A DNA stretch of 64,000 nt from positions 1,240,001-1,304,000 of the forward strand of contig JAMWBK010000008.1 of assembly GCA_029953675.1 (NCBI GenBank), in the 5' to 3' direction. The DNA is from Rhodosorus marinus CCMP1338 (taxonomy: Eukaryota; Plantae; Rhodophyta). This document shows, in pieces, positions 3,493-44,094 of this stretch; positions within the stretch are counted from its first letter, which is position 1, and every line of letters starts with the position of its first letter. A model generated the notes under the pieces. The model was given only the letters and a program-made list of their open reading frames with translations. It was not told where the DNA came from and ran no database searches. A program made the position numbers and the translations under genes.

Positions 3493-5612
3493 ATGAGGAG
3501 CCGGATCGTTCTAGTGGTCGTGCTAGTTTTTCTTTTCGCGTCTGATTCTGAGGCGAAAATTGGCGGCACCTTGGGCGATATAATTGAAAAAGGCCGTGAT
3601 TTTGCCCGTGACGAGGCGAAAGAGCTGCAGAAAGGCTTAGACAAGGCCAAGGAAGTATTCGATGATATCATTAAGGATATCGAAGATGGAGTAGTCGACA
3701 ACTTGGAGGATTTTGCGGAGGATCTGAAGCGGAAATTCACTGACTTTGACGTCGACGACCTCCTTGGCGGCGTAGTAGAAAAGATCATTGACACAGAATG
3801 CGATCCCGCTGATCTGAGCCCGTTCAGGGATCATCAGGTTGTACTCACCTATGACATAACATCAGACCACTACGAGCAGATCCTAGCGGGAATTTTGGTT
3901 GATATTTTTGGAGGCTCTGGGGCCGGTACTACCACAGTGCTGAACTTGATCTTGACGGACATGCTCGTTCACTTGGGAGGCCAGATTCAAAATGAAGAGA
4001 GGGATGACCTGCTGAGGGTGGTTGAGAGGGCAATCTCAGGTGTTCTCAAGGACGGTACAATTGAATCGGAGCACTTCATACTACTCACCAGGTTCATTAC
4101 CAGAAAGTGTAGAATAGTTCTTGAGCAGTGCGTACCAGAGATCGATCTCGACTTTTTCAAAACTCCCTCCAATTTATGCTTCAGGGGAACGCAAGGTTAC
4201 AACGAGCACACGTTCGTAATCGTTATTGATTACAAGCGTACATCATCCAGTATACCGAAACTGCCTCCACCACCAGGAATGACCAGGCACCAGATTTGTA
4301 TCCAGGAATGCAAGGCTTCGGTCACAGAGTTGGAACGGACATGCAGAGTCAGACGTGGTCCACACAACTGCGACTGCTTGACAAGCTCTGACACAAGCGA
4401 TCGAGAGCTGATCGACAGGGAGAGACATGCAAGACTCACCTGCCAGCACGGATGCAGCGTAGGCTCCCTCTACCATGGCACACCTGGTGGATACATCCGT
4501 GAGCACGAGAACGAGTGGTGGCGTATTGCAAGAGATCCTTCCGTCTATCCACACGAAGGCAAGTTTTGTGGAAACATTTGTAACTACGTGTGCCGACACG
4601 GAAAAATCCCGGAACTTGAGCACTTCTGCAGGAGACCAGCCCAAGGACCAGGCCACAACTGTGACTGTCTCACGGACGATGTACCGATTAGTCGCTGAAG
4701 GACAGGGAGAGACATGCAAGACTCACCTGCCAGCACGGATGCACTATCGATAACAAATATGTTCCGGAGGAGCGCAACGAATGGTGGTTAAAGGCGCGAG
4801 ATCCTGTTGTGTACCCACATGAAGGCAAGTTTTGCGGGAACGTATGCAACCACGAGTGCAAGAATTTTATCCCAGGTCTAGAAAATAGTTGCAAGATCAA
4901 GAGCGGTCCACATCAGTGCGATTGTAGTTCGGATACCAGCGATGTCTTAGCCCATTTGAGAGAGGCGAGGGCCTTGGTTCAGTGCACACAGGGATGCAAC
5001 ATCGCAGGTGAATACGTGGAGAGGGAAGACAACGATGTGTACAATCTCTACGTCAACACAGGCAAGTACCCTGCGAGAGGAGCTAACTGTGGTACAAACC
5101 CTTGCGTCAACGAGTGCAAATCGTCGATTTTTCAGCTTGAACAGCACTGCAAGATAAGACGAGGAAAGAACAACTGCAACTGTCTTGAGGATATCGCAGA
5201 TAAACGGCTGCAGGAGAAGGAACTCAAGGCTAGGAATCTCTGTGATCGTGGATGTAACGTTAATAGAGAGTACATTAAGAAGGCTGATAATGAATGGTGG
5301 AATAGAATGCGTAGGTCGGACAAATACCCTGCGACAGGAGCTAACTGTGGTACAAACCCTTGCGTCAACGAGTTCAAATCGTCGATTTTTCAGCTTGAAC
5401 AGCACTGCAAGATAAGACGAGGAAAGAACAACTGCAACTGTCTTGAGGATATCGCAGATAAACGGCTGCAGGAGAAGGAACTCAAGGCTAGGAATCTCTG
5501 TGATCGTGGATGTAACGTTAATAGAGAGTACATTAAGAAGGCTAATAATGAATGGTGGAATAGAATGCGTAGGTCGGACAAATATCCTGCGAGGGGCAAG
5601 AACTGCAGATAA
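3493..5612 (+). CDS. Secreted cysteine-rich tandem-repeat protein, with one frameshift near 4690
   Basis: Signal peptide MRSRIVLVVVLVFLFASDSEA, an acidic amphipathic segment, then about five 86-90 aa repeats (C-x3-C...NCDCL...C-x2-GC...EWW...YP...C). ORFs 3493-4698 and 4809-5612 join by one frame change (LIDRERHARLTCQHG vs LKDRERHARLTCQHG). Confidence 0.75.
5079..5594 (+). repeat. 258-bp (86-codon) near-identical tandem duplication inside the Cys-rich gene
   Basis: ggagctaactgtggtacaaaccc starts at both 5079 and 5337; the copies differ by only a few substitutions. Confidence 0.9.
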
Positions 5613-5869: not shown

Positions 5870-6420
5870 GAAAAACGAATTGCTTAGTTGGAGCTACAAT
5901 AAGAAAACCGCGAGGGGAAAAAAGACTAAGCGCCACGAAGGTCGAGTGCCTCCAAGATCAACGTAGCGTTCATACGGCACAACAAGAAACTCAATCGGGT
6001 AAATGAATGAATGTTAAGTTGGAGACTAAAAGTATAAAAAAAACCGCGAGGGGAAAAAAGACTAAGCGCCATGAAGGTCGCGCGCCTCCAGGATCAACGC
6101 AGCGTTCATACGCCACAACAAGAAACTCAATCGGGTAAACAAGGAATGAAGATGGTCCGGGCGTTCGGGGAAGACCTCTCGAGCACGTCGGTTGCAACGA
6201 TACAACTGAATGAATGGGGCGTGGAAGGTGTTACAAGAGCTTTTCGGAGCTGGGCAATCACGTGCATCTGCACGCTTCGCCAGCCACCGCCAACAGTGAT
6301 TCGGTAGCGAGCGGAACCAATAGGTGAGCCGTTGACCGCAGCAATATCGATAGAGCAAAAGGGAGCACTGGAGAACACCTCGAGGCAGCCGATTCAGCTC
6401 CGACACGAGCTGACGGTGCT
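5870..6420 (-). mobile_element. Lineage C fragments: internally deleted copy plus a tandem second 3' end
   Basis: LVSELNRLPRGVLQCSLLLYRYCCGQRLTYWFRSLP (post-RT region) is joined close to RERPDHLHSLFTRLSFLLWRMNAA. The terminal ~120 bp occurs twice head-to-tail. Confidence 0.75.
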
Positions 6421-6429
6421 ACTCAGAAA

Positions 6430-9400
6430 CTGTAGTCAGAGCTTACGTTGATATGTGAACCGGTTATTTGTTAGCTGGGTTGGGCGCGATTGAGTTTGTT
6501 CGCGATCTTCGTGTGGGCAGCCATCTTTCTGCGGCTGTTCCTCGCCTTTCCCGGCGTTTCCGGGTCGTCCGCGAAGGGGTTTTTGGGTTGTTCTGGTCTG
6601 GGAAGGTGGTTCCGGTACGGGATTGGTCTCATCTTGGCGTTGCTGTTTTACTCGGCGATATTTCGGTCATCGGCGGTGCTTGTGGGGTACAACTGCGCCA
6701 CTCTTCCCCCAGCGTCCCTCTGAATTTCCGCTTCAGATGGTTTCGTCAACTGCCTCTCCGCAGGCAGTGGAGCTACGACTCGGGAGATTCGGCACACTCG
6801 CCCAGCTGCCAGGTTGCACCAAGGCTACTGCGGAAGCCTTTGTTGTCCGAATTGCTCGCGCTGTTGCTGCTGCTGCTGAAGCCAACCGCCTCGCGGAGCT
6901 GGCTTCCACCCTGACTGCTTTTGCCGATGCCCAGTGCCCCGGCGCCACGACGGCGGCCGCTGATGTCCCACTTGCGCGTGTCCCATCAGGGACAAGCGCG
7001 GTTGCGACAGGTGTCCATGAGACAGCTGTCCTCCCGAATCGATCTCTTCTGGCCGACTCTCTGTGTCTGGTCCCGTGCCCCCTGCCGCCGCTACCCGCCC
7101 GGTGCGGCCTTCCTACTCCCAAGTGCTCCGCCGTGGGTCCGTCGAGGTCCGCGCGGAGGCCCTGGTACGTACGTTACCTGCTGAGCCTGCCGTTGACTCT
7201 GTTCAACGGATCATATCTCCTCCCCGCTGGGTCTTGATGGCCAACGTGCGACCCCAGCGCTCCTCGCGCTCCGGGGCCCGCATTCCTGTTCGCGATTTCG
7301 TGACACGATGGCCTCGTGTCTCGGCGCGTCGCCCCGCGATTTTCTCTACGTTGATTTTTCGGGACCCCAGCTTGCTTCTTGGTGACAGATACGGCGCACC
7401 AAATCCTATCTACTTCGTTGAAAACGCCTCCTGCGCAGAGACCTGTTTTAGCGAATAAGGTTTTGACACGCGCCCGTGTTTCTTTAATGTTCGATTTTGA
7501 TCGTTTCGCCGCGGAATCCCTCGCCCCTTCGGATCTCCTTGGCGCTAGCGCAGCATTCATTCAGCGCAGAGGACATTCTGACCTTGCCGGTCTCGGCCCA
7601 TTTTGAACGGCTTTCAAGGGTTCAGAAAAACCTGCTAGATCGGCTCCCAAATAGGGGTTTCTTCCATGCTGCGGTCCAAGATTTCCTTGCCTCGGAGACT
7701 TCGCTTTTGGAGAATCATCCTGACTTTGCTCCCGCTGGGCGAATTTCTGTCGGTGCGGAGCCTTGTGACGACGTGGGGGAGCTACCTTCTATGGATGTAA
7801 ATGTCGATCCAGAGGTGGACCCGCTCGCCATTGAGCCGAGCACCCCTTCGCCCTTTGGCGTCCGGGGGAGGGTCTCCGGCTCCTTAGGGGCTATCTATGC
7901 ATCCCTCTCCTCTTTGCGTGCCCCTCCGCTCAAGCGCCCTTTCTTGGCGCCAGTTGCGGGGGGAAATTCTTCTGATTCCGTTGCGGATTCGCATCCCATA
8001 AACGCTTCCTCCGTGGTGAGGGAGCAGGATGTCTGAGTCTTTTAGGGAACATTGCGAGCTTCCTGCTTTCTTTCCGAGCCCAGGTGGCTTTGAGGACTGG
8101 CGTTCTCGCCTTTTCTCTTGGTTCGAAGGTTTTGTTGGGCGTTTTCCTTCTGCGTATATCCCTCTTTGCCCTCGTTCGCCCCCAGTCTCTCTCCCTCATC
8201 GTTGGTGAGGGTTTCTTTTCTTTTGGATTTCCTGCTTATGGAGGTGGCCGACCATCCTCAAGCAGCACTTGCTTGGAAGCTTTTGTTTGTTTTTCCTCGG
8301 CTAGCGCTCACGGTCTCCCAGGGGCGCGATGCATGTCCAATTAGACGCAAAGTTCAGTCTTTTCTGGCGGGGGACTTTGCTTTCTTAGAATCTTTATACC
8401 TCGCTAGTGTCTCTTCTTCCTCTTCGTTCGGGACTTCACCTTCTTCCCGTTCCCGTAGGCAGGTATGGGCAAAGGCAGCAGTGGCACAGGGGGATATTCG
8501 GCGTGGGGCGGCCATCCTCCAGCAAGGCGCTTCAGTCGAGCCGTATCGAACTGACCTGGCTGATCCAGTCGCCGCGTTGTTCCCCGCGCGCGACGTGAGT
8601 TGGAACTCTGAGTTCCAGCGTGTCTTAGATCCTTTTGTCGATTCCTCACGCGGTAGGGGTCGGTTGCTTGTCCGGCCGGATGAGGTTCTGGCTCTGCTTA
8701 GGTCCGCCCCGAAAGGTCGTGCACCTGGTCCCTCAGGACTCCGGGTCGAACTTTTTCACTGGTTGGGTGAAGAAGGGCTGGACGTCTTTGCGCGGGTACT
8801 GGAGGGTCTTTTCAATGGGGACGATTTTTGCGCAGAGGCCTGGGCACTATTGTCGCGCTCCCAACTGGTCCTCTTGCCCAAGCCTGGACATTCAGGCCAG
8901 ACACCTTCCCTTCGGCCAATCGGGATGTGCGAAGCATTGCGGAAGCTGGCGAGCCGCTTTCTATCGCGTCAGCTCACTAGGGAGGCCACGGGTTTTTTGG
9001 GTTGACCCGGGTCGGTGTCGGCTATTCAACTGGTGACGCGTATCCTGCAGCTACGGTCTCCTTGATGAGCCCTTGGGCACGCTTTCTGTGGATTTCGCCA
9101 ACGCGTTTAACAGTGTGTCTCGAGCACACGCGCTTGAGGTAGTTCGTCAGCTTTTCCCCTCTGGCTTCCCGTTCTTACGCCGCGTATATGGTGAAGCGCC
9201 GAACGGGTCCCGATTTGCCACCTTGGGTGCCGAGAGCCACACCTTTGCGGCTCATACGGGTGTGCAGCAGGGCGATCCCTTAGGGCCGTTCCTGCACGCC
9301 TGTGGATTGCAACTGGTGCTGTTGCGGCCGAAACATCAGTTCCCGCGGGTCCGTGCAGTCGCCTTCCATGACGATGTAACGCTTCTTGGCACTCCCGACG

Positions 9401-9742
9401 ATCTGGTGCCGGCCTACGATTTTCTCGGCGAGGTGGCTTCCTTGGTGGGGCAGCGCATTAACCATGCCAAGTGCGATTTCTGGGGGGGTCTCACTGCACC
9501 TTGGACGCGGTTCCATCCAGGTTCAGAGATATTTGGCGAGCTGAGGGCTTCCTTCTGTTCGGTGTCCCCATAGGCACCCCGATATTTGTTGAACGCAGCC
9601 TCTCCGCGCTCCTGAGTCATCACGATGAGCTCCTGACTGAGCTGTGCAGTCTCCCAGAAGGGTACCTCCAGACCGCTCTGCTCATCTTCCGGTTCAGCGC
9701 GTGCCAGAGGCTGACCTATTTTTTGCGGCAGCTACCCTAGGT
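6430..9742 (+). mobile_element. Lineage C CRE-like non-LTR retrotransposon, 5' region and RT, frameshifted, 3'-truncated
   Basis: RT motifs GRAPGPSGLR, LRPIGMCEALRKL, VDFANAFNSVSR, GVQQGDPLGP, AFHDDVTLLG across ORFs 8118-9005, 9073-9573 and 9471-9740. The 5' boundary is approximate. Confidence 0.85.
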
Positions 9743-10542
9743 ACCTGGCTGCCAGACTTGCCAACGAAACACAGACGCGGCCTGAGTAGCGGGGAACTGA
9801 ACCTGAGCCTGCGACAACTGATGGGATTGACGCTCCCGGGTGTACGAACACTACGTCTACGATCTGTTCACAGTAACATGACGCTGCAGGCATTCAATGC
9901 CTCCACAACTGCACCAGCTCTACAGGGAGCTGGACACTTCGGCACAACATGGTCAGGGACGCACTGGCGACACAACTGGGACAATGGCGACTAGAAGTGA
10001 CAGTAGAACCGACTGGACACTACTAATGCAGTCGACTCCGCCCTGACATCCTAGCTCGACACCCACGGACAGGCAAGCTCCCCGTCATCGATGTGAAGGT
10101 GACCTCGCCGTTGCAAAGAACACACATACACAAAGCGTCTTGGGAGACCGGGTATGCGGCGCACAAAGTGGAAAAGCTTAAAGAGTCCAAATACCGTGAC
10201 AGTATCGGAGAACACAATGACAACATCTTCGTGCCCTTCTGTCTGGAAACCTTTGGGCAGATGGGAAAATAAGCGGGTGAATTCCTCAAGGAAGTGACTG
10301 TACACCTGGATAAGAGGGAAACGCAAGCAAGTGAGGCTCGGGCGATTTTGAACCGCACTCTGAGGAAAGGAAACGCCTTGCTCGCCACCCAGGCTCGTCG
10401 TGTCGACGAAGCAGACTACGAAATCGTCCCTTTCTCATACTGTAGCCACACAACCCATTAGGGGTTTCTTTGCTGACCAATAGAATCCTTATTCCTTCTT
10501 AATGAGCTCCAATAGGGAGGAGCTCTTCAGTAAAGTGTACAC
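9743..10542 (+). mobile_element. Lineage B CRE-like element, 3' part (RLE domain and 3' UTR)
   Basis: GTWLPDLP..ELNLSLRQLMGL, LRHNMVRD, LRPDILARHP..IDVKVTSP, FVPFCLETFG. The 3' UTR ends agtaaagtgtacac directly before the 16-bp repeat. Confidence 0.85.
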
Positions 10543-10562
10543 GGTTACGTTAGTCTGGGGTT
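10543..10562 (+). repeat. Telomere-like repeat (G-rich on +)
   Basis: ggttacgttagtctggggtt. Confidence 0.85.
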
Positions 10563-10566
10563 GAAT

Positions 10567-10638
10567 TCCTTCGTAGTCTAGTGGCTAGGATAGCGGTCTC
10601 TCACACCGTTGGCCCGGGTTCGATTCCCGGCGGGGGAA
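10567..10638 (+). tRNA. tRNA-Glu (anticodon CTC)
   Basis: Folds as a cloverleaf: TCCTTCG/CGGGGGA acceptor stem, D-loop AGTGGCT, GCGGT-CTCTCAC-ACCGT anticodon arm, CCGGG-TTCGATT-CCCGG T-arm. No encoded CCA; TTTT lies 4 nt downstream. Confidence 0.92.
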
Positions 10639-10646
10639 TAAGTTTT

Positions 10647-11571
10647 AAGACCCTCTCGAGAGAGGCACACCACACTGCTTTCACCCGGCTGGTCACTTAT
10701 CCCCTAGTCGACCCCGAACACAGAGCTCGAATCCGCTCCGCAGCAGGAGCCGGTTCAGGCATCTGGCTCAGGGATTTGCCTCAATTTGACCCCCCTGAAA
10801 ATTGAGTGGTAAGGGCATGCACCTGAACATACGAGAGTTGTCTGGGCTCCCGATTCCGGGATCGCCGAGCACGGAAAAGTGTACTACGTGCAATAGTACG
10901 CGCCGTACAAACAGCGTACAAAGATTCCTCATTGTCAGACTTCGACTGGGCTGTGGCAATGGCGACATGATAAGATCTGCACTGAGCTGGCGCGCTGGCT
11001 TAACAGATGGCACTTCAGAGACGTTCAGCAAGAACCTACAGATTACTTCACAAACTCGAATCTGAGACCGGATCTGGTGACTGTCCACCCTCGAACATGG
11101 CAAAGATTTGCGATCGATGTGCAGTGGTGTCACCCCTACAGGCAAGATACCTACCCAAGAGCAAAGACAATAATGGATACTCAGCGAAACAGGCGGAGCG
11201 CTGGAAACTTGCGCACTAGAAGAAGGCTATGGCGACAGAGCATCCAGATGACAAACTGATTCCGATTGCTATTGAAACCTTCGGGAGGACTGGTCAGATT
11301 ACACAGGATTTCCTACGGGAGGCTGCGGCCACATGCTCACCAAGCAGTACGAGTTGAGCAATGTGAGGGCTCAACTACACAGGACATTTTGGTCAGGGAA
11401 AGCAGAGCTTGCTTTAGGGGCTTTGCGTGTGGATCAGTCGGACCAACCACTGATTTTTCTTTTTATCGTAGCTAGCGACCCCGGGTTGCTGGGGATAAAC
11501 CCAACAATCTTCCCTAGATAGTGATAGAACTAGTCTTGCGCTGCATTAGGCAGTTGCCCAGTAAAGTCTAC
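10647..11571 (+). mobile_element. Lineage A 5'-truncated element (zinc knuckle, RLE, 3' UTR), decayed
   Basis: KTLSREAHHTAF..HRARIRSAAGAGSGIWLR, RPDLV, IPIAIETFG. The terminus gcattaggcagttgcccagtaaagtctac matches the lineage A 3' end. Confidence 0.85.
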
Positions 11572-11904
11572 AGTTACACATGTATTACGACATTCAGGTC
11601 CGATATTTGCACACCCAATCGGACAACTTTTTATCGGATTGAAATGGCAACCATAGCTTAGCCAATGCCATGTGTGGGCTGTGAGGTTCTTGCTTAGGAC
11701 AACAGTCTCATCTCTAAACAAGTCTCTATTTGGATGCTTTCATGTAGCAATCGGGGTCCTTTGAACACACTCATATCTTCTTGTGCATATGGAAGTCACT
11801 TTACTGGCTCCTGCGGGTGAAGAATATATTCCACAGCTTTCTTGATCTACGTACGAAACGTACTGCATTGTTTCGGAGTGTTTGCATACGTAGAACGTAA
11901 AGTT

Positions 11905-11961
11905 TTACGCTAGTCGTAAACGCTAGTCTGCAGTAGGCAGCTGCCAAGTGAAGTTTACGGT
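11905..11961 (+). mobile_element. Degenerate 16-bp repeats plus a ~30-nt lineage A 3' terminus
   Basis: ttacgctagtc...acgctagtctg followed by cagtaggcagctgccaagtgaagtttac and ggt. Confidence 0.6.
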
Positions 11962-12391
11962 CGCGGGACGCATTCGCAAAATCCATTGTTCTCGCTATTG
12001 GCGATTGCAACCTAAGGCAGAGGGATATAGGAAGAAAAAGGGCCGAGTCCGTCATAGTCGAAGGGTTGAAGAAAAGTGAGTCCACAACGAGAGCAAAATA
12101 GTGAGCAGGAGTGTCATAAGGTCGGAGGGGAAAGTTCATCACGTACCTCAGATGCGCTTGAGCAAGGAAATTCGCTATGGAGGCCACACAGGTTAGTCTG
12201 TTCGTCAATGCACGAGGTACTCGAATTGCAGCAACCGCATATTATATCGTCCACATCTCTTGACAGAAAGCCCGAAAATCCACTCTAGACGAGGTTAGTA
12301 GACGCACAGATGCCCGCGAGGTCCAAGTAGAAACGGATGCACACTTCTGTCAGACTTGTTCTGCAAACGCAGCTTGAGCATTTCCTTGGAC

Positions 12392-13215
12392 TTACGCTGT
12401 TGTTGCAGGTTCCTCCAATGGGGAAGCACCTAAAGTCCACGACAAAGCAGAACCCCAACGGGCACTGGATCTCGCAAGAGCATGTTCCGTCATCAGCTCT
12501 GACGGGACTCTACCATGGAGAACGCATTTATAAGAGGTACAGCCAGGACGAAGTAAGCCAGCAGCAAATGGTTTACAATCTTCGTTCGCAGCATTTCCCA
12601 TCAGAGGTTTAACGGAACTCACCTCTTCGGCAATAGAACAATTGAAGTCTGCAGTGTTAATACAGTCGGTAGAGCCCTCCGAAACGCATGTATCCGTAGC
12701 CGTGCATGCGCAAGCACAGAAACCATTTTCGTCTCTGAAAGTCTCAGCCGCGCGTTGCAATTGAAATTCGAATAATTGACGCACTGGTTATTTGTCTCCA
12801 AAACGCATGTACCCTCAGCCTTGCACGCGCAGGCGCATTCCCCGTCTTGATCAATCAGCACCTGGCGTTGTTAGAACCGGGGACGGTCTCGTCTCAGTTT
12901 GTTTGCATTGTCCCAGGGAAGGAGTGGGTGATTCAGAAGGTGGACTAGTACTTACCGAAAAGCGCGGGCAAAGAGGTTCATCAAGTCCACGGCACGTGAA
13001 GCCATCCCAGCACGAATCCCCTCCACAACATGCGCAGAATTCATCACCTTCTGGAAGGTATGGTACCTATCACGTCAGAGAGGTTGGTGCAACTTGTCAG
13101 CCGTTTGCAACACGTTCACTATCCCCCAGATTGTAAAGCATGGAATAACCCCAAGCGCGTTTTCTGAAGCAAACCAGTCCTGATGGACTCAAGGCCTTCG
13201 TGATTCGTTAAAGGT
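12392..13215 (-). pseudogene. Frameshifted Cys-rich, Ser/Pro/Thr-linker continuation of the 13216-13896 gene
   Basis: Fragments EFCACCGGDSCWDGFTC, STSPPSESPTPS, GECACACKAEGTCV..CVNYSNFNC and GFCACACTATDTCV..CINTADFNC lie in different frames. Confidence 0.55.
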
Positions 13216-13896
13216 TTAGCGCATTATGGAACGACATACCCTTGGAGCGGGGCAGAGAAAGTCGCCAATCGCCGAACAAACACCCCCTAACCCTCGGCAC
13301 TGATCCGCTGCGCAAGCCTCACACTGAATCTCAACGGTACAGGAGGTCGTGTTGTCTGCCTCTCGTGTCGTACATAGGTCGTCCGTATCTTCGTTGGCAC
13401 CAAGAAAAGCACGGATTTCCTCACCATCGGGGATTGAACTGACTATGGCGTAAGCGACTGCATTGACAGTTCCTCCGCAGCACTCAGACATTCCGGCTAA
13501 TTCGTCCGGACAGATGAGAATCCTGGCTACTGTAACCGGGTCTACTATCCCATTTCCTGACTTCCAACTATCGATGTCCTGGTAGGACGTAAATCTATCC
13601 TGCTTCTCAGGAGGCTCACCAAAGTGCCCCCCTCCTCGCAGCTTATTGAGTTGATATCCTTCATCAGCTCTGAACTTGAGTCTCATACAGCTCGGGGGGA
13701 ACTCGGCCACAATTTTGTCGTTTAACCTCGTGTCCGCACACACTTCACCATATCGGACACCATTCCTGTCACGGAGTGGTCTACAAAACTGTGAATATTC
13801 AAACGCTCCGCTGCGTGGATCACTGGAGCAGCCCTGACATTGAACGACAGCAAGGACCGCGGCCAGTACGAGTGCTACAAGTGGGCTAGACCCCAT
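13216..13896 (-). CDS. Putative secreted Cys-rich protein (N-terminal part), unknown family
   Basis: Signal peptide MGSSPLVALVLAAVLAVVQC; 226-aa ORF with many Cys residues. Confidence 0.65.
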   Translation of the reverse strand: MGSSPLVALVLAAVLAVVQCQGCSSDPRSGAFEYSQFCRPLRDRNGVRYGEVCADTRLNDKIVAEFPPSCMRLKFRADEGYQLNKLRGGGHFGEPPEKQDRFTSYQDIDSWKSGNGIVDPVTVARILICPDELAGMSECCGGTVNAVAYAIVSSIPDGEEIRAFLGANEDTDDLCTTREADNTTSCTVEIQCEACAADQCRGLGGVCSAIGDFLCPAPRVCRSIMR

Positions 13897-14468
13897 ATCT
13901 CCTCAACCCCTCTCTGCGTGTCCAGCTTCTTTCTCCTACGAACCCCCAAAACTACCAAGACTCCTCTCTCGACTTCACTGAGCATCAACAGAGGCGTACT
14001 TCGTCTCTTGAGTAGAGCTGTGCAATTATGTACGAGCAAGGGTGGATTTGCCGGTGGGCACGAGGGCTGTTCGAAATTTGCCCACTTTCTATGTCCCAAG
14101 GTCCATTTCCCGCCTTTGTGCATTTCTTCACTGTTTGGGCCTTCGCGTTGCTTCGCTTCAACCAGTGCGGGGCTAGAGATTCCGCAACACAAATCCCAGA
14201 TTATGCAGAGTCCAAGGACAGGGGATCCGATTCTTTCTAAAGCTTAAAAAAATCAGCAAAGCTTAATGTGCCAGGGAAAATATTGTCAGGACATATAGTA
14301 CGTGCGTGAACGATCCCGTGATTTGAAGGTTGCGAATCCTTCAGTAAACAAAAGTTCCAATTCCTCATGGCGAGGTGGGATCTGATTTATTTCAGTAGTG
14401 ATCTCGTCCCAAGGAAGACGCGGATGTGCGAAAGGGTTTGCAGTAAATTCTTCATGCATCAGAGTGTG

Positions 14469-14487
14469 ATATATATATATATATATA
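14469..14487. repeat. (AT)n microsatellite
   Basis: About 9 AT units, immediately 5' of a truncated lineage C-type element. Confidence 0.9.
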
Positions 14488-14489
14488 AA

Positions 14490-15190
14490 ATCATTTTTAT
14501 GACCGAACAGCCCGCTCTTCCGTGGCCCTCCGAAAGGGGCTCGCCATGCCCTCTATGCCTTCAGCACGAAGCTCCCGCGGATTTTTGGAGCTCACTTGCT
14601 CGCTAGCTGCCCGACTGTGAAAGCAGTTCGCACCCGCCGACATACACGGATCCTGAACCTGCTGTATCGCGAGCTGCGCCCCATCGTACGGCAATTTGGT
14701 CTTGAAATCGAACGTGAGAAGCATCTGCCTGTTGCTGACTACCAAAATGACGAGTGCCGAGTTGCCGACCTCGTGGTTACCTGTGACGATAGCCGCCGAA
14801 CTACGTACGTTGATCTTGCCGTTCCTAATCCTCAGGCCAGCCGTTATCTGCCTGCTGCGGGAGAGCGCCGTGGATTCGCGCTGCCACTATGAGACGTAGC
14901 AAGGAAGTGAAAGATACGAGGGCTTTGTCTTCTCCGGGAATTCGAGCTTGGGCCTTAGCTCATCGCCTGGTCCATTTGATAATTGATTGTTTCGGATTTA
15001 TGGATTCCGTGGGTTCTTATTGGCTTCGGGAGTCCGAGAACGCCCTGACCGCCTTTCCTGGTTGCTTACCCGACTAAGCGTTCTTCTGTGGAGTATGAAC
15101 GCTGCTTTGATGTTGGAGGCGCGCGATTTTCGCCAATCGCTTTTTTTCCACCTCGGGGTTTTCTGCAGTCCCCGATTAAACACATTCATT
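14490..15190 (+). mobile_element. 5'-truncated lineage C-type element: zinc knuckle, RLE and tail
   Basis: CPLC...HLLASCP, RTRRHTRI, RVADLVV..TYVDLAVPNP, IIDCFGFMDSVG, WSMNAALMLEAR; ends cacattcatt. Confidence 0.85.
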
Positions 15191-15460
15191 CTGCTGGGGC
15201 CTGCTAGAGGATCTGTTTTTTTTCCTACGACAACGCTGGATTCCATACTGACGCGCTTCCTTTCCCCTACTATAGATTTTGGGAATGTATAGCCGGATAT
15301 CAGGGGATAGCTTGAGTCACGGTTGAAAAAAAGGGGGAATCGCAATACCATAGATCCAGATCACTCGTCCCCAGTAGCTTACTCCACGGGCGTCAGCCCC
15401 ATCAATCTCGCCCCCCCCCAAAAACCAGTTGAAAACTCAAAGAACAAACAACTGCACGTC

Positions 15461-16535
15461 GTGCTCTGTGTAGTCACTGTCGGGCAAACCATACGAAAAA
15501 TAGGTTTGGTATCTAAAAAATGATTTGCTGGGAAATTGTACTGAAATTTTTCTTCCGCAAAATGTAGCAGGCTGAAGCAGAGTCCTTACGTATCAGTTTC
15601 AGTTTCAAAGAGAGCAGTGAGTTGAGTGCAGCCAGCGGCAGTTTGGATCCGAAACTTTGCAAAGCTTAAAAGCATAATTAATTCTTCTAAACTGAGGTTT
15701 CCTGAAGACGATTGGATAACAGAATATTTCGGAAAAAAGGAGATTAGAACCGGTGTCCAAATAATTTTAATGATACAAACGTTGCTTTTGTTTAATGATA
15801 TTAAGGTTGAGAATCGTTGTGGACTACTTTGCTGTTGGAACATGCACATATTATCATCATCTCTCGATCTGAAGTACGTGCATTGTCAGCAACACGCAAT
15901 GTAATACACAACGATTCTCAACTTTAATATCATTAAACAAAAATCGTATACAACCACCGATATTAGCTCACTATTCACGAAAAGGGTAGTATGATTGAAT
16001 GATTTATATTCTCGACAAGAGAGTTGTGGTGTGTAGTCTCTGTGGGGCAAACCACACGAAAAATAGGTTTGCTGATCTAAAAAATGATTTGAGGGGAAAT
16101 TATTCTGAAAGTTTTCTTCCGCAAAATGTAGCAGGCTGAAACAGAGTCCTTATGGTACAGTTTCTGTATAAACGAGCCCGCTGAGTTGAGGGACAGTGGC
16201 AGTTTGGATCCGACATGGTCCAAAGTTCAAAATCAGAAAAGCATAATTAATTAAACCAATTTATTCTTCTTTGCTGAGGTTTCCTGAAGACGATTGGATA
16301 ACAAAATATTTCGGAGAAAACGGGGATTAGGACTGCTGCCCAAATAATTTTAATGATACAAACGTTGTTTTTGTTTATTGACATTCAATGTTGAGAATCG
16401 TTGTGGATTGCTTCGTTGTTGGACATGCACATATTTCCATCCTCCTAAGGGCATACAAACTACCGAAATTAGATCACTATTCAAGAAAAAGGCGATATGA
16501 TTGAATGATTTAGATTCTCGAGAAAAGAGTTTGTT
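15461..16535. repeat. AT-rich diverged tandem duplication, period about 563 bp
   Basis: tgtgtagtc..gggcaaacca.acgaaaaataggtttg starts at about 15467 and 16030, with collinear similarity through both units. Confidence 0.85.
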
Positions 16536-16605
16536 GGATCAATGTGTCCAACGAAAAGTAAGGATGGGACTTTTTTAAGCCAGGGGGGGATTTCTATCCT
16601 CCCGA

Positions 16606-16666
16606 TGTGTACCACTGCACCAGCTCTACAGGGAGCTGAAACCTGCGCCACAACATGGCCCGGGAC
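16606..16666 (+). mobile_element. Short internal fragment of lineage B
   Basis: cactgcaccagctctacagggagctg...gcgccacaacatggcccgggac matches about 9905-9960 and 43490-43540. Confidence 0.75.
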
Positions 16667-16718
16667 GGGTTACGTTAGTCTGGGGTTGCCTTAGTCTGGG
16701 GTTACGTTAGTCTGGGGT
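16667..16718 (+). repeat. Three tandem telomere-like 16-bp units (G-rich on +)
   Basis: GGG TTACGTTAGTCTGGGG TTGCCTTAGTCTGGGG TTACGTTAGTCTGGGG T. Confidence 0.9.
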
Positions 16719-19700
16719 CGCGAGTGTCCACTGATGGCACAGGCCAGGATACCGAGACGACTCCGGCAGCCGTAGAGGCTCCACAGGGCAACACTGCACC
16801 CCAGGCCGACCACACTGCCACCCATCACGCGATGGACACACAGGACAGGCAGGAAACACCTACGCAATAATGTCCAGCCGACAAAGGGGAATCAAGCGAA
16901 GACGCGACGAGCCTCTATTCCCCTCGGATCGTCAAGCCTGGGTTAAACGGTGGACAGACTTCGTTGACCAAGTTACGACGGGAGGCAGGCATTGGACGCG
17001 CCTTACTTGGCTCGGGGACTGACCCAGATCGAAGCAATCGCACGTGGAGTAGGTCTAACCGTGGAACCCGAAAAATGCCGTTTTCTCGGCCCGCGTGAAG
17101 TTTCGAGGGGCTCCCTGCCACCTAGTCTCCGGGCCCTTGGTGAACATGCGGGGCTCGAGCACCATGGCGTCGGTTTTGGGAGTGACAACTTTGTCCATGA
17201 CTCTTGCGACGAGTTTTAGCGCGCCATAAGCAGCTCACCGACGCCATTGAGCGCCTACCGGATAGCATGCTCCAATCGGCCTGCCTGCTCTCCCGCTTTT
17301 GTGCCGGCCCCCGACTGAATTACTGGCTGTGAAGCCTTCCACCGCACTGGGGCTCGTGGACGGCAGCCAAGGCGGACGAGGCGACGCTGAAGCACTGGGG
17401 AACGCTCCTGGATGAACCCCTGGATGTGGAAGCGGCTCCTGACAGGGACCTAATTCGTGGCCAGATTGCCCTACCTTTACGATTAGGCGGATTTGGAGTG
17501 GCCGACCGTGGCCTAGTATGCGCGGCAGCGGCGGCGGTCGCCTCCTGGGCTACTGCGCTTCGCACCTTGGTGAGTTTTCGGATGCGAAGTGCTTGCCTTT
17601 TGGCTAGAGCACTGACTAGCGAAGACCCCGTGACCCTTCCGCCGCCGCTTTTGAGTATCTATGATGCTCTGCAACAGGCGTTCAGCAAGTGCAACGCCGT
17701 GCCGGACCAGAGCCGATCCAGATTTCGATCCTGGAAGGAGCTGTTATGGGGACGAACTGAGGCGCTCGAGGACTCTCCCATCGACAGAGTACTCGCCGAC
17801 GAGGGGGAAGCTAGCCCCGGGTCACCGGTTGCCGATTACCCGGGTCTGAGCCGATTGTGGAGCTCGCGCACTGATGTGATACAACATAGCCTCACCTGGG
17901 GCCAACGCAGTGCCGCTCACGCAATCTTGCTCAACTCTCCACTCACACCGCCTACCACCGCCGCTCGCCTCCGCGGCACGGGAGGCCATCTTTCACATTT
18001 GTGGCTAACGACCCTGCCGTCATCACTGGGTCACCGTCTGGATGCCTTCCAGTTTCGCTCTGCCACACGGATTTACCTGGGCGGGGAGGACAATCCTCAC
18101 GCGGAACTCCCTTGTAACCCTCCGGAGCCACCTCAAAAGAAGCGCCAGCGAGTAACCGCTGCTGGCCTCGGACCAGATACTGAGATGACTCCCGCCACAC
18201 TCGAGTCCCCGCAGCGGGTCAACACTCTGAATACTGCATCGGACACACCTACGATGGACACACAGGACTGACAAGAAGAAGACCTATCATAATGCCGACA
18301 CGACGCCGCGGGATCAAACGCCCACGAGAAGAGCCTCGGTTCTTCTCTGATCGTTAGGCCTGGATCAGCCGTTGGAATGCCTTCGTCGACGAGATTACGG
18401 AGGGGGGCATGCAATGCACTCGCATCACCCAATGCCCGGTACCCACCAGGCGCTTCGTACCCCGAGCACACGTTTCTACATCGAGCCGGCTTCTTCGTGC
18501 TGCACTCGAGCTTTCGATGGACCATACTGCACCGCCGCAAGCCAGCCTGCTTCTTGTAGGACTCCCTGGTTTGGTATTTGGACAATCGACACTTGCCATC
18601 GGCGTGCAGGTCGCCGATGTGCTAGACGGAGACTTCCACCAGGTCTGGACCGACCTCGAGGGGAAGGCCGCATCGCTGACGCCGTCTAGCGCACCACAGG
18701 GAGCCGAAGCCGTTCGTCGCCGAGTCACTGGGCGCCGAAAACAAGCGCTGAAACTCGCACGTCTTGGTCGCCTCTCGGATGCTGCAAGAAGACTACAGGC
18801 TAAGGAAATGGCTCCTTTCACAGAAGCTACCTGGCGGCAACTGCAACAACTCTTCCCGAGCCCTGCTGACGTGGATTGCCCTGCCGAAATCTCGGATGCC
18901 CTAGAAAGCCTACTCAAGGCGGACGACGACACTCTGAAACAGCGGTGGGGTTCAAGAAAGGCAGCTGACGAGGGCCTCCTATCAATTGTAGCACGTCTTC
19001 CTCAAGGGAAGAGCCCCGGCCCCAGCGGCCTGCGTGCGGAACACCTGCAAGGCGCGAACCAGCATACTCAGGTCGCACTGATCCGGGTCTTGTGCCAACT
19101 CGCGACTACTCCGGAGAGATTCTCACCCCTTCTGACACGCGCCTTGCGCAGCAGTAGGCTCCTGCCGTTCGCTAAGCCAGCACAGGGGACTGACTCCCAG
19201 GTAAATCCAGGCCTCCGTCCAATCGGCGTGCCGGAGGTTTTGTGAAAGGTGGCCACTCAGTGGACACTGCGAGCGGTGATGAACCGGGTTAGAGAGCTTT
19301 TGGTGCCCCTACAACTGGGGATTGGGGTCAGCGGTGGGTGCGAGCGGTCACTTCACGCCATCCAGGCCCACCTATCATGTGAACCTGACTCGGTAGTACT
19401 CCGCCTGGACCTCGCGAACGCGTTCAACCGAATAGATCGGCGTATCGCCAAAAAACTGGTGGATCAGAACTTCCCGGAGCTCGCCGCGGTTTCTGCGCTC
19501 GACGCAGAAACCGGAGTTCAACAGGGAGATCCATTAGGGCCGGTGCTACACGCGCTCTCCCTCGCCCCCTTCCTTAAGGCACAACCATCGTCGCCATCCA
19601 CGACGTTATCACTCTGGTTGGAGCGCTGCCTAGACTCAAGGAGGCACTACTCTGGGGACAAAGCTTGCTACCTTGCCTCGGGGCCCGCTTTCAACGCAGC

Positions 19701-20345
19701 AAATGTAGCCTCTACGGACCATCGCTAACGACAACGAGCTTAGTCAACCGTGCGATTCCTGGCGTGAAAGTGACCAGGGAAGGCCTCTCGATTCATTCTA
19801 TCCCGATAGGGACCCGACACTACATCGAAGACGAGTGCCGGCGGCTACAGAACCAGCACGAGGCGCTGTTCAAAGAGATCTCGAGGCTACCAACAGAGGA
19901 ACTGCCCATACAGCTCGCCCTGTTCCGGTACTGTGCTGAAACGCGTTTGGACTACACTCTAGGATGCCTTGCCTACGCATTTGGACGAGCTCTGGCCCGA
20001 GAGGCGGACAACATGACGTGATGTCACCTGGAGGTCTTGTTCGGCGGCCTCTCTACCACGGCCTTCGCCGAGGACGAGTTAGTACACCCGGTCAACGAGC
20101 GGATGTCGCTACCCTGCCGATGGGGCGGATTGCGGCTCGCGACACGTACGCGGATACAGCCGACTGCGTTCTTCTCAGCATGGGCGCAGACCTTGGGAGA
20201 CCATCAAGGCCAGTGGCCTTATACAACGGAGATACAGCGGCAGGTTGGGCAAGCGGGCGCGGTACACACAGGTCGCCTAGGCCGCATCCAGGTGTCAACA
20301 GAGCAGATTGGAGAGCAACTACGAGCGTCTGCTCGTGCCATTAGG
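16719..20345 (+). mobile_element. Mosaic of CRE-like fragments: lineage A (16719-~16980), C-like post-RT segment (~16985-18080), lineage A RT region (~18082-20345)
   Basis: C-like part: QIALPLRLGGFG, SRTDVIQHSLTW. Lineage A part: GKSPGPSGLRAEHL, RPIGVPEVL, LDLANAFNRIDR, GVQQGDPLGP, LPCRWGGL. Cut off at about 20345. Confidence 0.8.
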
Positions 20346-22876
20346 TGGCGCCAAAAAGTTGCCGTGAAGACTGGATCGCGATCTGTGACAAAACTCCGTG
20401 GAAATCCGAACCAGGCGACGATATGTTGCAGGATAAGTGTTGCCACTCCTTCCGCGGTTTCCATTTTCGTCGTCGGGATAAATACGGCGTACTTCGTGAG
20501 TCGATCGACCACAACTAGTATAGCGTCATTACCCGCGATACTGGGAAAGCCTGTTATGAAGTCCATAGTCCAGTCGACCGCGCGATTCTCCGGAATTGCG
20601 AGCGGTTGCAGCTCGCCCTGGTTGCGCCGAAGTGGTTGTTCACGGGCGCATATCTCGCATTGTTGTACGCGCGTGAAAATGTCTTTCCTCATGCTAGGCC
20701 AGTAATAGCGTCGTCGCACAACACGGTAAGTAGCTTGTGCGCCGAAATGGCCTGCCGTTAGAGACTGGTGGTGCCCATCGATGACCTGATTAACACGGCG
20801 TTCGGGTACGCAAAGTCGTGCATGGAGGAATAATAGACCCTTTTTTCGTTGGAAACCCTCAAACTGGTCCGGGCTTCGAAATTGCGTGCAAAATTCTGGA
20901 TCGGCTTGGTACTCTGGAGTCCAATCGGCTTCCATCGTTACGCGGGTGGCTCGTAGTGCGTCGCGACTCAGTGCATCCGTGACGTTTATCTTGCCGCGTA
21001 CGTATTGAACCTCAAAGGAGTAGGGTAGTAATATATTCACGTACCGCGCCTGCCGACGAGTTAATGTCGTCTGTGTTTGCAAGAAGCGTAGCGGGTTATG
21101 GTCCGTACGCACAGTGAACTGTTGCCCATCAAGATACACGGACCACCTGCGGATGGCCAGGACGATGGCGTAGAGTTCTTTCTCGTACGTACTGTAGCGT
21201 TTCTCGGTACTATTGAAGGATCGGGACATGTACGCCACGGGCACCTCCTGATCCTGGCGGGTCTGGAATAGGATAGCACCCACCCCGGTGTCGCTCGCGT
21301 CAGTTTGCACGATGAAGGGGAGGATCGGATCAACCATGTACAGCATGGTGGTTGCTGATATGGCGGATTTTAACCCATCAAAGGCTTGTTGTTCGTCCGC
21401 GTGCCAACCCCACTTCTGGTCCTTCTTCGTTAGCCTGTGGAGGGGCGCCGCCACTTGGGCGAAGTGTGGTACAAAGGGGCGCAAGAAGTTCGCGAAACCC
21501 ATGAAGGCCCGTAGCTCCTTAACCGTCATTGGCGTCCTCCAATTCTGAATTGCTTTGACCTTCTCCGGATCGGGACGTCGAGTGCCTCCCGCCAAGATTT
21601 GGCCTAGGTAGCAAACTTGGCGTAATCCAAAACCGCACTTCGAGTATTTGACGATCAACTGATGCTGCTCAAGGCGTCGTAGCACCTTTCGAACATCGTC
21701 CTGGTGTTGTATGTCATCTGGGGAATATACCAGAATGTCGTCAACGTATAACACCACGCACTGGTTGAGAAGATCATATAATACGTCCGTCAGGTAGCGG
21801 ATGAATGCCGAGCGCGCATTCTTCAACCCAAACGGCATGACATTCCATTGGTACTGTCCGAAGCACGTGACAAAGGCCGTCTTCTCGCGTGATGCCTGTT
21901 CAATTGGCAACTGCCAATATCCCGAGCGAAGGTCTAACGTTGTGAAAACCCGAGCGCTGCTCAGGGTATCCAATAGCTCCTCCACTCTAGGCGGGGTCGT
22001 TCTTTCTCGCACGGTGATCTGGTTCAAACGGCGATAGTCGATGCAGAGGCGTCGCCCACCGTCTTTTTTGTCCACGTACAACACAGGTGCAGCATACGGA
22101 CTTCTGCTCCGTGAGATAAATCCTTGCTCTTCCAAGTCGTGCAATTCTCCTTGTAGCCGCTCTCGGTCGACCCGTGACATCGAATATGCGCGTTGAGCTG
22201 GTGTACTCGCCCCTGGTTGCAATTCGATTTTGAGTGCATATCGTTGCCGGTTCTTCGGTGGCAACGGCAATATATCTTGGAAAACTTGGGGAAACTCTTT
22301 CCGGATGACCGCACCAAGCCTCTTTCCTGGGTCGGCAACCTGGTCCTTTCCGCCTTTCTCTAGGCCTTCCTCTTTCCGGATGACCGCGTCAGACCTCTCC
22401 CCTATTTCTTCCTCAGTTTCCATACTTGTTATCCCACGCATGCTGGTGTCTTCCGCTCCCAATACCATCTGTAGGGGCTCCGCACTACAATCGATAGTTA
22501 TTCGATGTTGCCTCAAGAAGTCGAGACCTAAGTATACATCATGGCTTAGATGCTTGAATATTCGCAGCTTCGTCTTGAATTGTCGTCCCTGGAGTGTGAT
22601 CGTTGTCTTCGTCACTCCGGGGCTGATCACGGTCTACTCACCGACAGCCAACCCGTATGTCCGTGGCTCGTCGTACCTCGGTAGGTTGGCGGCTTTCGCA
22701 AAGTCCTCTCTAATTGTCGTCACCGCACCGGTGTCGATGAGACATTCCACCGGTTCCGCTGCCACCACGCCTATTGCAGTTAGGCTTGCATTACCCCGTT
22801 GCTGCAACCCAACGGTTGGGATGCTGGTCGCTGGACTCTCGGACGGCATCCCTCGTCCGGAGTCCGTCCGTTTTCC
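20346..22876 (-). pseudogene. pol: Gypsy pol (protease, RT, RNase H, partial integrase) with an in-frame TAG at 22634-22636
   Basis: LIDTGA, RLCIDYRRLN, LDLRSGYWQL, MPFGLKNA, YVDDIL, VQTDASD, TDHNPL, H..GHFG..CEIC, VDWTMDFITG, SFVTDRD. Confidence 0.93.
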
Positions 22877-23687: not shown

Positions 23688-23894
23688 TGTTAGAACTCTT
23701 CTAACCAACTTGTCTTTACTTAATTCTAGGTCTCAAGATCTAGCAAAGCTAGGTCTTATATAGTCTTGGTTACTGTAAACTAAGACGTACCTGACAGTAA
23801 AGTAGAAACTGTTGGATACTAGCACACGAGCGTCTTACACCAAAGTAGGGAGTGTCTTACACAGATTACACAGCTCTTAGGGCAAGTTCTAACA
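23688..23894 (-). repeat. 207-bp LTR
   Basis: TG...CA ends with a 9-bp terminal inverted repeat TGTTAGAAC/GTTCTAACA; TATATAAG on the sense strand at 23762-23755. Confidence 0.9.
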
Positions 23895-26238: not shown

Positions 26239-26239
26239 C

Positions 26240-26741
26240 ATGATGTTTGTATAAAATGTCCTGCTTTCTACGAAATCCCTGCTCCCCGTATTTTACTGCT
26301 TCCGGGTATACTGCTGCGAAATCAGGATCTTGTAGATATGCTCCGGTCCAATCTTCTTGGGGTAATATACCGGAGACCGCCAGCTGGTTGATCGCTCCTC
26401 GGCTGAGAGGGTCTACGATATTTTCTGCTCCCTTCTTGTATTCGATATCAAAAGTAAACGGCAGGAGTCTATTGACATATCTTGCCTGTATATCTTGCCT
26501 GTATGTCAATAGACTCCTGCCGTTTACTTTGGATATCGAATACAAGAAGGGAGCAGAAAATATCGTAGACCCTCTCAGCCGAGGAGCGATCAACCAGCTG
26601 GCGGTCTCCGGTATATTACCCCAAGAAGATTGGACCGGAGCATATCTGCAAGATCCTGATTTCGCAGCAGTCTACCCAGAAGCAGTAAAATACGCGGAGC
26701 AGGGATTTCGTAGAAAGCGGGACATTTTATACAAACATCAT
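26240..26741. repeat. Fold-back inverted duplication: 240-bp arms, 22-nt spacer
   Basis: 26240-26479 is the reverse complement of 26502-26741 with at least 6 mismatches. The spacer contains a short tandem duplication (tcttgcctg twice). Confidence 0.92.
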
Positions 26742-32451: not shown

Positions 32452-32484
32452 AACCCCAGACTAGAACCCCAGACTAACGTAACC
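32452..32484 (-). repeat. Telomere-like repeat tract (C-rich on +)
   Basis: aaccccagactag aaccccagactaacgtaacc. Confidence 0.9.
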
Positions 32485-37232: not shown

Positions 37233-37295
37233 CAGACTAACGTAACCACCCCCCAGACTAACGTAACCCCAGACTAACCCCAGACTAACGTAACC
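37233..37295 (-). repeat. Telomere-like repeat tract, about 4 units with variants
   Basis: cagactaacgtaa ccacccccc agactaacgtaa cccc agactaa cccc agactaacgtaa cc. Confidence 0.92.
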
Positions 37296-38807: not shown

Positions 38808-38827
38808 AACCCCAGACTAACGTAACC
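38806..38827 (-). repeat. Telomere-like repeat
   Basis: ctaaccccagactaacgtaacc. Confidence 0.9.
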
Positions 38828-43233: not shown

Positions 43234-43255
43234 CCCCAGACTAACGTAACCCCAG
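43234..43255 (-). repeat. Telomere-like repeat
   Basis: ccccagactaacgtaaccccag. Confidence 0.9.
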
Positions 43256-44094
43256 GCACTTTCAGGCGTTTGAGGAATTGGTGGAGAACCCGGGGATTAG
43301 TGAGACGGTACATGCGCATCTCCGTTCCTGCACCGGACCAGGAGGGGGCACCTGGCTGCGAGAATTCCACTCGAGACACCCGCGCGGTCTGAACACTGAC
43401 GAATTGAACTGCTGGGATTGCCGCGGCCGAGAGTACTTACTTAGTACATGAACTATATGCTGGCACGCCATGACCCTGCAGGCCTCGCCTCTGCACCAGC
43501 TCTACAGGGAGCTCGACCTGCGACACAACATGGTTCGGGATGCTCTTGCTGCACAACTCAGATAATGGACACTGGATGTGACGCTGGAGCCTAATGGACA
43601 CTAACCATGCACCCAGCTTCGACCGGACATTTCACCACGCCATCCTCCGACCGGGAGGCTGTACGTGATCGACGTAAAATTGAACTCGCGGCTGCAAAGA
43701 CCTACCTACACAAAGCGTCCATACAGGCCGAGAAGTTTAAGGAGTCCAAATACCGGGATGCGATCGGAGCTCAGAATGACGACACTTTCGTGCCCTTCTG
43801 CGTGGAGACGTTCGGTGGGATGGATAAGCAAGCTGATGAATTCTTGAAAGAGGTGACTCTGCACTTGCAGCACCCATCGACACAAGTCAGCGAAGCACGG
43901 GCGACACTCAACCAGTGTTTATGGAACGGGAATGCACTACGGCGAGGCGCGCAGAATTGACGAAGGGAACTATGAGATCATCCCTGTAGTAGAACGTAGC
44001 CACACAACCTGTTAGGGGTTTTTAAACGCATAGATAGACTCCTTATTTCCTCTTGACGGGCTCCAACAAGGAGTCCTTTAGTAAAACGTTGACA
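43256..44094 (+). mobile_element. Lineage B 5'-truncated element, inverted relative to the array
   Basis: AFEELVENPGISETVHAHLRS..GGTWLREF, LRHNMVRD, FVPFCVETFG. The 3' UTR matches 10440-10542 and is followed by gttacg. Confidence 0.85.

Follow-up and report, generated by a model that had tools for sequence, protein, structure and literature searches.

In a 64-kb window of the nuclear genome of the rhodophyte Rhodosorus marinus CCMP1338 (the whole 64,000-nt stretch analysed; assembly GCA_029953675.1 (Lee et al. 2023, PMC10250338), contig JAMWBK010000008.1, positions 1,240,001-1,304,000), a complete tRNA-Glu lies directly upstream of the 3′ part of a long interspersed nuclear element (LINE). 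We consider it probable that window positions 10563-11577 are a single retro-inserted chimeric complementary DNA (cDNA) made from two RNAs, a primary pre-tRNA-Glu and a truncated LINE RNA, and that the insertion was a one-off event. A sequence-only reading of this locus had listed a repeat, GAAT, a tRNA-Glu(CTC) without CCA, a trailer, a truncated element of a lineage termed A and agttac, and all of these are present. The parts, in order, with the basis of each assignment in brackets, are:

6987-10542, plus strand: lineage B element, the upstream neighbour, with a decayed open reading frame (ORF) for reverse transcriptase and endonuclease; its terminus ...CAGTAAAGTGTACAC ends at 10542
10543-10562, plus strand: 20-nt spacer GGTTACGTTAGTCTGGGGTT separating the lineage B terminus from the start of the chimera (repeat match)
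10563-10566, plus strand: GAAT, interpreted as a pre-tRNA 5′ leader (read directly in the sequence)
10567-10638, plus strand: tRNA-Glu(CUC), 72 nt, no encoded CCA (ARAGORN, Rfam RF00005)
10639-10646, plus strand: 3′ trailer TAAGTTTT, directly after the discriminator A (read in the sequence)
10647-10649, plus strand: AAG junction bases (ambiguous in alignments)
10650-11571, plus strand: 5′-truncated lineage A element (CRE/R2-type LINE), 922 nt (DNA, protein and terminus alignments)
11572-11577, plus strand: AGTTAC, the first six bases of the repeat unit (A variant), followed by unrelated, non-repeat DNA

The tRNA (10567-10638) is in sense orientation on the plus strand, directly 5′ of plus-strand LINE homology that begins 0-3 nt past the last T of the trailer, and the junction reads tRNA-trailer-AAGACCCTC. 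Lineage A homology is unambiguous only from ACCCTCTC at 10650 (alignments to the lineage A copies and to transcript L001); the preceding AAG could be either the first element-derived bases or non-templated additions. At its other end, the LINE part stops at the conserved terminus of the family, ...GGCAGTTGCCCAGTAAAGTCTAC / ...CAGTAAAGTCTAC, at 11571 (aligned with copies A1-A3), which is its natural 3′ end. The sequence-only reading had recognized this usual terminus, which ends at 11571 and not at ~11574, and the end that it gave for the whole unit, 11580, takes in 3 nt of unrelated flank. A sense tRNA placed 5′ of a LINE that reaches its natural terminus is the layout expected from a start at the 3′ end followed by a template switch.

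Equally regular is the position of the tRNA within the array. The unit GAAT-tRNA-TAAGTTTT begins exactly after the 20-nt spacer, as does the next insert after the spacers at 38808-38827 and in transcript L003, so that the tRNA leader occupies the position of an insert 5′ end. Deleting 10563-10646 would yield an ordinary 5′-truncated insert junction. Both ends of the tRNA unit match, within 0-4 nt, a canonical array junction on one side and the element truncation point on the other; the flank of the tRNA that is neither element nor repeat amounts to just 4 nt upstream and 8 nt downstream. Both outer junctions of the chimera, one after the spacer and the other at the LINE terminus, are at canonical positions. 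A 74-amino-acid ORF that runs across the junction had no record in an exact look-up.

ARAGORN places a tRNA-Glu with anticodon CTC at 10566-10639, and Rfam RF00005 matches 10567-10638 over the full model (positions 1-71) with 59.6 bits (gathering score 29; E = 2.2e-10). By these two methods it is the sole tRNA, and the sole Rfam match, in the 64 kb. The cloverleaf is canonical, with every invariant position, three G-U pairs (4:69, 5:68 and 27:43), and consensus A box (TAGTCTAGTGG) and B box (GGTTCGATTCC). The run of four T residues in the trailer (10643-10646), the only T run of at least 4 between the tRNA and 11387, is an RNA polymerase III (Pol III) terminator that marks the natural 3′ end of the primary transcript. 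Together, the leader, the end lacking CCA and the trailer with its U-tract are the hallmarks of a primary Pol III transcript, not of a mature tRNA. GAAT would be a purine-initial leader, although some of its bases may be non-templated; on folding, the AAU of the leader is able to pair with the AU that follows the discriminator.

Self-comparison and tblastn resolved at least two element lineages in the window, with all copies frame-broken. The assembly is Nanopore-based and Pilon-polished (PMC10250338), and single-base indels within repeats need some caution. Besides the lineage B element upstream of the chimera, the copies are:

32485-~37248, minus strand: lineage A
37296-38719, minus strand: lineage A
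38828-43231, minus strand: lineage A, ~4.4 kb, extending from repeat to repeat
23893-28830: lineage B
43252-44093: lineage B

The lineage B copy at 6987-10542 has 75.7% DNA identity to 23893-26233 and 28433-28830; its assignment is agreed on by an RVT_1 match in ORF 9073-9573, the tblastn map and the alignment of its terminus with that of copy B2. The tail of the chimera has 66-68% DNA identity to lineage A copies (32479-33244, 37290-38194 and 38822-39750) and 89.5% identity over 86 nt to 44099-44183. It includes ~700 nt of decayed coding sequence plus the 3′ untranslated region (UTR), and its frame is dead, with three frameshifts and one in-frame stop at 11217-11219. What it encodes is everything downstream of the reverse transcriptase, that is, the C-terminal zinc knuckle and the restriction-like endonuclease region, and its protein pieces align with proteins P0121 and P0122 across the whole domain.

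The motifs conserved in this region (alignment A2) comprise a CX2C...HX4C knuckle (C..C...H....HC), RHD, E, RPD, DV.V (D-V-x-V) and E.FG (E-x-F-G), and they identify the endonuclease type of the family. Pfam assigned no family to the nuclease region, and a PDB sequence search with it returned noise only. An AlphaFold2 model has a confident core (predicted local distance difference test score, pLDDT, 77-89 for residues 185-250) with the order alpha-beta-beta-beta-alpha-beta; the model was built from a shallow alignment and has a pLDDT of 54 as a whole, making it evidence of moderate strength. When the model was searched with Foldseek, the top five PDB matches were R2 proteins (including 9dou, 8gh6 and 8iby; E = 5e-3 to 0.2), and the next matches were other PD-(D/E)xK nucleases. 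RVT_1 was found in protein P0171 as well as in window ORF 9073-9573, and P0171 weakly matches the L1 ORF2p reverse transcriptase in PDB (E about 1e-5). The LINEs of the R. marinus genome carry the RepeatModeler label CRE, and the published RepeatMasker table lists 4,036 copies of LINE CRE/SLACS, covering 2.82 Mb or 9.04% (PMC10250338). On the basis of the motifs, the R2 matches of the model, the RVT_1 domain and the published label, we place the family among the LINEs with a restriction-like endonuclease (the R2/CRE/NeSL group).

Relatives of the family are few. Those of the nuclease region number only 49 among 1.84 billion representatives, Closterium and Diplonema proteins included, and the nearest named one is an R. 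marinus UniRef protein. Near-full-length relatives, with an RVT_1 domain, come from transcriptomes; the NCBI annotation of the R. marinus genome is without element ORFs, and protein searches gave only transcript-derived relatives. A pattern search of metagenome contigs with alignment A4 matched 140 stretches, none of which was confirmed, and energy-based folding of the element 3′ ends gave no significant structure. Transcripts of the family exist (L001, L003 and L004), among them some from defective copies and some that read through an array; the frame of L001 is also broken.

We then considered the target. The 20-mer GGTTACGTTAGTCTGGGGTT occurs 12 times in the window at ≤3 mismatches, against 0.01 expected, and a 16-nt tandem array lies at 16667-16718. 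Consecutive inserts are parted by the exact 20-nt spacer GGTTACGTTAGTCTGGGGTT at 10543-10562 and 38808-38827, and by the near-identical 20-mer CGTTACGTTAGTCTGGGGTT at 2199-2218 of L003. The length and letters of the spacer correspond to one 16-nt unit and a duplicated GGTT of 4 nt, as would result from insertion at one position per unit. All complete 3′ junctions consist of the terminus (...AGTAAAGTTTAC in lineage A, ...AGTAAAGTGTACAC in lineage B) followed by (G/A)GTTAC, the element termini adjoin GGTTACG..., and all repeat-preceded 5′ junctions come directly after GGGGT(N), in the window and likewise for the next insert of L003. The family has, in short, a site preference for one position of the repeat. 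A literature search for the 16-nt repeat in both orientations produced chance primer matches only.

Transcripts and genomic copies differ at their 3′ ends. Transcript L004 (2100-2141) ends in ...AATAAAGCTTAC AGTTACGTT followed by poly(A), with GCTTAC directly before AGTTACGTT, which indicates that the element mRNA carries the first ~9 nt of the downstream repeat unit; the AATAAA/AGTAAA in the element terminus is probably the poly(A) signal. Genomic element copies are without an A-run, and reverse transcription must therefore begin upstream of the poly(A). Presumably it starts by pairing of the nicked target with ...GUUAC. L003 (2150-2260) also records co-transcription of an array across the 20-nt spacer into the next, 5′-truncated copy.

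Several further arrangements of the repeat were observed. Isolated 20-nt blocks lie at 10543-10562, 38808-38827, 43232-43251, 44599-44618 and 59203-59222, and at 2199-2218 of L003. The copy at 59203 (AGTTACG...) stands alone amid unrelated sequence with no element terminus adjoining, and could represent an unoccupied target of one unit, or else an insertion that consists of a tail only. At 16600-16720, a B-like element is broken off within its coding region (...CATGGCCCGGGACG) and is followed by 3.2 irregular repeat units and then an A-type 5′ end; this looks as if repeats had been added to a broken end, as in telomerase-like healing, or as if a 5′ junction had undergone a deletion. Irregular repeat units at 37249-37295 (GGGGTTACGTTAGTCT, GGGGTTGCCTTAGTCT and GGGGTTAGTCT) resemble some telomerase products. 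Between the 20-nt spacer and a 5′-truncated lineage A copy, a 45-nt sequence is present three times in tandem as 5′-junction filler (38673-38808), and Rfam at permissive thresholds found no match in it.

Two further segments were also noted. On the minus strand, 44099-44620 consists of a repeat unit, a 5′-truncated B-type segment (VENPAISETVRARLRS..., 81% identical to 43279-43380) and then an A-type segment. Nothing else is as closely related (89.5%) to the beginning of the chimera tail as this A-type segment, which is cut off at 44099, where a plus-strand B copy abuts it with its 3′ end and AGTTAC. A second template switch, here from one element RNA to another, may have produced this composite, or it may belong to a recombinant lineage. 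Right after the chimera, ~380 nt (11578-11958) end in a 45-nt copy of an A-type terminus (...CTGCAGTAGGCAGCTGCCAAGTGAAGTTTAC) followed by GGTCGCGGG; they could be what remains of a very strongly truncated insert, or a short non-autonomous element with nothing but the 3′ end in common. Rfam at permissive thresholds, with which further small-RNA chimeras were sought, found no match in 11578-11958.

From this layout we infer a template jump, the order of events and RNA as the source. A lineage A LINE would start target-primed reverse transcription at a nicked repeat unit, with priming through the ...GUUAC that the LINE mRNA carries just past its AGUAAA-type terminus. After ~0.92 kb, the reverse transcriptase would meet a broken or degraded template end (10650), move to the U-tract 3′ end of a nearby tRNA-Glu(CUC) primary transcript, and copy the trailer, the tRNA and the 4-nt leader. 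The cDNA would finally be joined to the upstream half of the target, directly after ...GGGGTT. In a variant with an equal outcome at the DNA level, reverse transcription would start only after a LINE RNA fragment had received the pre-tRNA at its 5′ end by ligation. R2-type reverse transcriptases jump between templates in vitro. Chimeras of a Pol III transcript and a LINE with a like layout are established for U6/L1 (PMC4476161, PMC11838501). Since defective copies such as L001, with its broken frame, are transcribed, the tail may have lost its reading frame before it was copied. The retrocopy, for its part, may still be transcribed, since a tRNA gene has its promoter inside the copied sequence and the T4 run was copied with it.

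A number of points weigh against this interpretation. The chimera is a single instance, and the case for it is built on how this one locus is put together and on the regular features of the neighbouring copies. Its 5′ side is at the canonical GGGGTT; its 3′ side bears only AGTTAC (AGTT versus GGTT), not a full repeat, and a clean target-site duplication around the unit is not demonstrated. The sequence-only reading, which placed the unit inside the target repeat, thus holds for the full 20-nt unit upstream but not for the downstream side, where six nucleotides give way to non-repeat DNA. AGTTAC could be a target remnant or duplication, could have been borne by the RNA or could reflect priming microhomology; it also follows the B2 terminus at 44094-44099, beside unrelated DNA. 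The 4-nt leader is short. From its three frameshifts and one stop, the tail looks old or derived from a dead copy, and no relative of it exceeds 73% identity save the 86-nt piece at 89.5%. A metagenome scan with the tRNA 3′ end plus trailer (TTCGATTCCCGGCGGGGGAATAAGTTTT) gave 0 matches. In human L1 chimeras the tRNA parts are mostly antisense half-tRNAs (PMC11838501), and a full-length sense pre-tRNA is not usual. Lastly, a perfect cloverleaf beside a decayed tail would also fit a gene kept by selection.

This last point leads to the possibility of a resident tRNA-Glu gene bracketed by two independent insertions, lineage B with its repeat 4 nt upstream and lineage A 8 nt downstream. Such a gene would account for the fully canonical tRNA (cloverleaf, A and B boxes) with its own terminator or downstream T-tract, and for a tRNA that is better preserved than the adjoining tail, as under selection; the DNA on the right-hand side (11578-14500) is non-element and includes an ordinary-looking ORF (13216-13896). 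We nevertheless regard it as distinctly unlikely, because two independent coincidences are needed: a canonical 20-nt spacer with a 4-nt flank on one side, and a LINE junction 0-3 nt past the T-tract on the other. Since insertion of the elements is specific to one position within the repeat unit, a repeat unit must moreover have pre-existed 4 nt upstream of the gene, and no native flank remains on either side.

Less probable again is a tRNA-headed, LINE-tailed, non-autonomous family resembling short interspersed nuclear elements (SINEs), with its own Pol III promoter and with lineage A proteins supplying its mobility by way of the common 3′ end. SINEs classically combine a tRNA head with a LINE tail (PMC11838501); in this unit, both the A box and the B box of the head are intact, and the tail keeps a complete 3′ UTR and a terminus that the LINE machinery should recognize. 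Transcription of such a unit is hard to reconcile with its T runs: TTTT at 10643-10646 separates head from tail, and TTTT at 11387 and TTTTT at 11454 and 11460 precede the terminus, so Pol III would be expected to stop short of the 3′ end of the unit. Nor is the tail short, consisting of 922 nt of frameshifted coding sequence and UTR, and the head, which keeps a leader and a trailer of its own, is an unmodified tRNA and not a tRNA-related remnant. No second copy is present within the window or loci L001-L004, and the published RepeatMasker table of the genome has 0 SINEs and 0 small-RNA repeats (PMC10250338), although low-copy families could escape it. Among the three options that the sequence-only reading had offered, the jump or ligation onto a pre-tRNA is thus favoured by the transcript-like ends, the canonical spacer and the natural LINE terminus; the SINE option is disfavoured by the internal terminators, the 0.9-kb decayed coding tail and the lack of SINEs in the published repeat table, and the resident gene by its two coincidences.

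A join at the DNA level, in which a tRNA gene fragment met a resident truncated element through deletion, end joining or ectopic recombination, would suit a heavily rearranged neighbourhood (a 3′-cut B-like copy followed by repeats at 16668, the composite B/A segment at 44099-44598, and inverted arrays and LTR (long terminal repeat) insertions nearby) but is very improbable, as random breakage is unlikely to trim to the leader start and the U-tract end or to hit the canonical spacer. A model with the tRNA as primer is out: the tRNA is in sense and joined to the sense strand of the element, and its U-tract has no complementary run at the junction.

Comparison with known systems places the probable pre-tRNA/LINE retrocopy nearest to the mammalian U6/L1 chimeras (PMC4476161, PMC11838501). 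As in those, a full-length sense Pol III transcript with its U-tract lies 5′ of a truncated LINE that keeps its natural 3′ end, and here too the whole was probably inserted as a single unit at the LINE target. Unlike U6/L1, where L1 is APE-type and inserts at TTTT/A, the LINE here has a restriction-like endonuclease and targets a single position within a 16-nt repeat; it is joined to a pre-tRNA that retains its leader and trailer, poly(A) was not copied, the flanking duplication is ≤4 nt and a single case is known. Human tRNA/L1 chimeras (PMC11838501) share with it the combination of a tRNA and a LINE 3′ part in a single insertion, but are mostly antisense half-tRNAs attributed to twin priming, whereas here the tRNA is complete, in sense and with unprocessed ends. 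By this analogy, the present chimera resembles U6/L1 more closely than the known tRNA cases.

As for the LINE itself, it resembles CRE/SLACS/CZAR, NeSL and R2 in having a single reverse transcriptase ORF, followed by a CCHC knuckle and a PD-(D/E)xK domain, and in using one position of a repeated target, with downstream target sequence on the RNA. It differs in that the target is a 16-nt, irregular, G/T-rich tandem repeat instead of a spliced-leader or rRNA gene, and the sequence identity of the R. marinus family to any described family is very low. Head-to-tail arrays with one to a few short G/T-rich units between copies, an orientation fixed relative to the repeat and an RNA 3′ end that pairs with the target recall SART1/TRAS1 of Bombyx and other telomere-repeat LINEs; those two, however, are APE-type and occupy TTAGG telomeres, whereas the present locus is internal, 1.25 Mb inside a 2.1-Mb contig. 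Tail and head also parallel tRNA-derived SINEs with LINE tails, which have a tRNA head with A and B boxes and the 3′ end of a partner LINE, but such SINEs lack an internal terminator, have short tails and form families, in contrast to the TTTT after the head, the 0.9-kb tail and the lack of a known second copy here.

The window covers ~1.24-1.30 Mb of the 2,117,290-bp contig JAMWBK010000008.1 and includes no chromosome end. The term 'telomeric element' used in the sequence-only reading is unsupported as stated, and a telomeric locus is rejected on the basis of this internal position. Within the window, repeat-specific LINE arrays face each other, with plus-strand copies at 6000-20250 and minus-strand copies at 32465-44620, and Ty3/gypsy-type LTR retrotransposon sequence separates and interrupts both. 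The LINE cluster is flanked by ordinary genes (patatin, RWP-RK and the CT domain of acetyl-CoA carboxylase). It may once have formed a chromosome end; a fusion point and a centromere-like island of transposable elements are other possibilities. A 258-bp unit is tandemly duplicated with 98% identity at 5063-5592, within a cysteine-rich ORF (4809-5612). Other features of the neighbourhood are:

20219-22630, minus strand: Ty3/gypsy-type pol
26247-27755: Ty3/gypsy-type integrase
26240-26741: 240-nt inverted repeat
45329-46795, minus strand: intronless ORF, identical to an NCBI protein on JAMWBK010000008.1
48059-49174, minus strand: intronless ORF of an RWP-RK protein, identical to an NCBI protein on JAMWBK010000008.1

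The chimera is probably a single, old insertion with no demonstrated function. On our interpretation it belongs to an already documented kind of event, for which both the element class and the organism are new. Chimeras of Pol III transcripts and LINEs are a natural record of template switching or RNA ligation in target-primed reverse transcription, and are the presumed raw material of SINEs. To our knowledge, the documented cases are almost all APE-type L1 in mammals. If our interpretation is true, it would add the R2/CRE group, in vivo, and the Rhodophyta to the range of such chimeras, would mean that unprocessed, U-tailed pre-tRNAs are accessible to the reverse transcriptase of the element, and would provide a concrete candidate for the dispersal of tRNA genes by retroposition. 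We think it unlikely that the chimera is a working retro-duplicated tRNA gene, copied from a pre-tRNA together with its internal promoter and terminator by a LINE with a restriction-like endonuclease. If it does work, site-specific LINE arrays would have a means of founding new Pol III genes, and if the weak T4 terminator were read through, the chimera could initiate the evolution of a tRNA-headed SINE where, in this lineage, no SINE is known.

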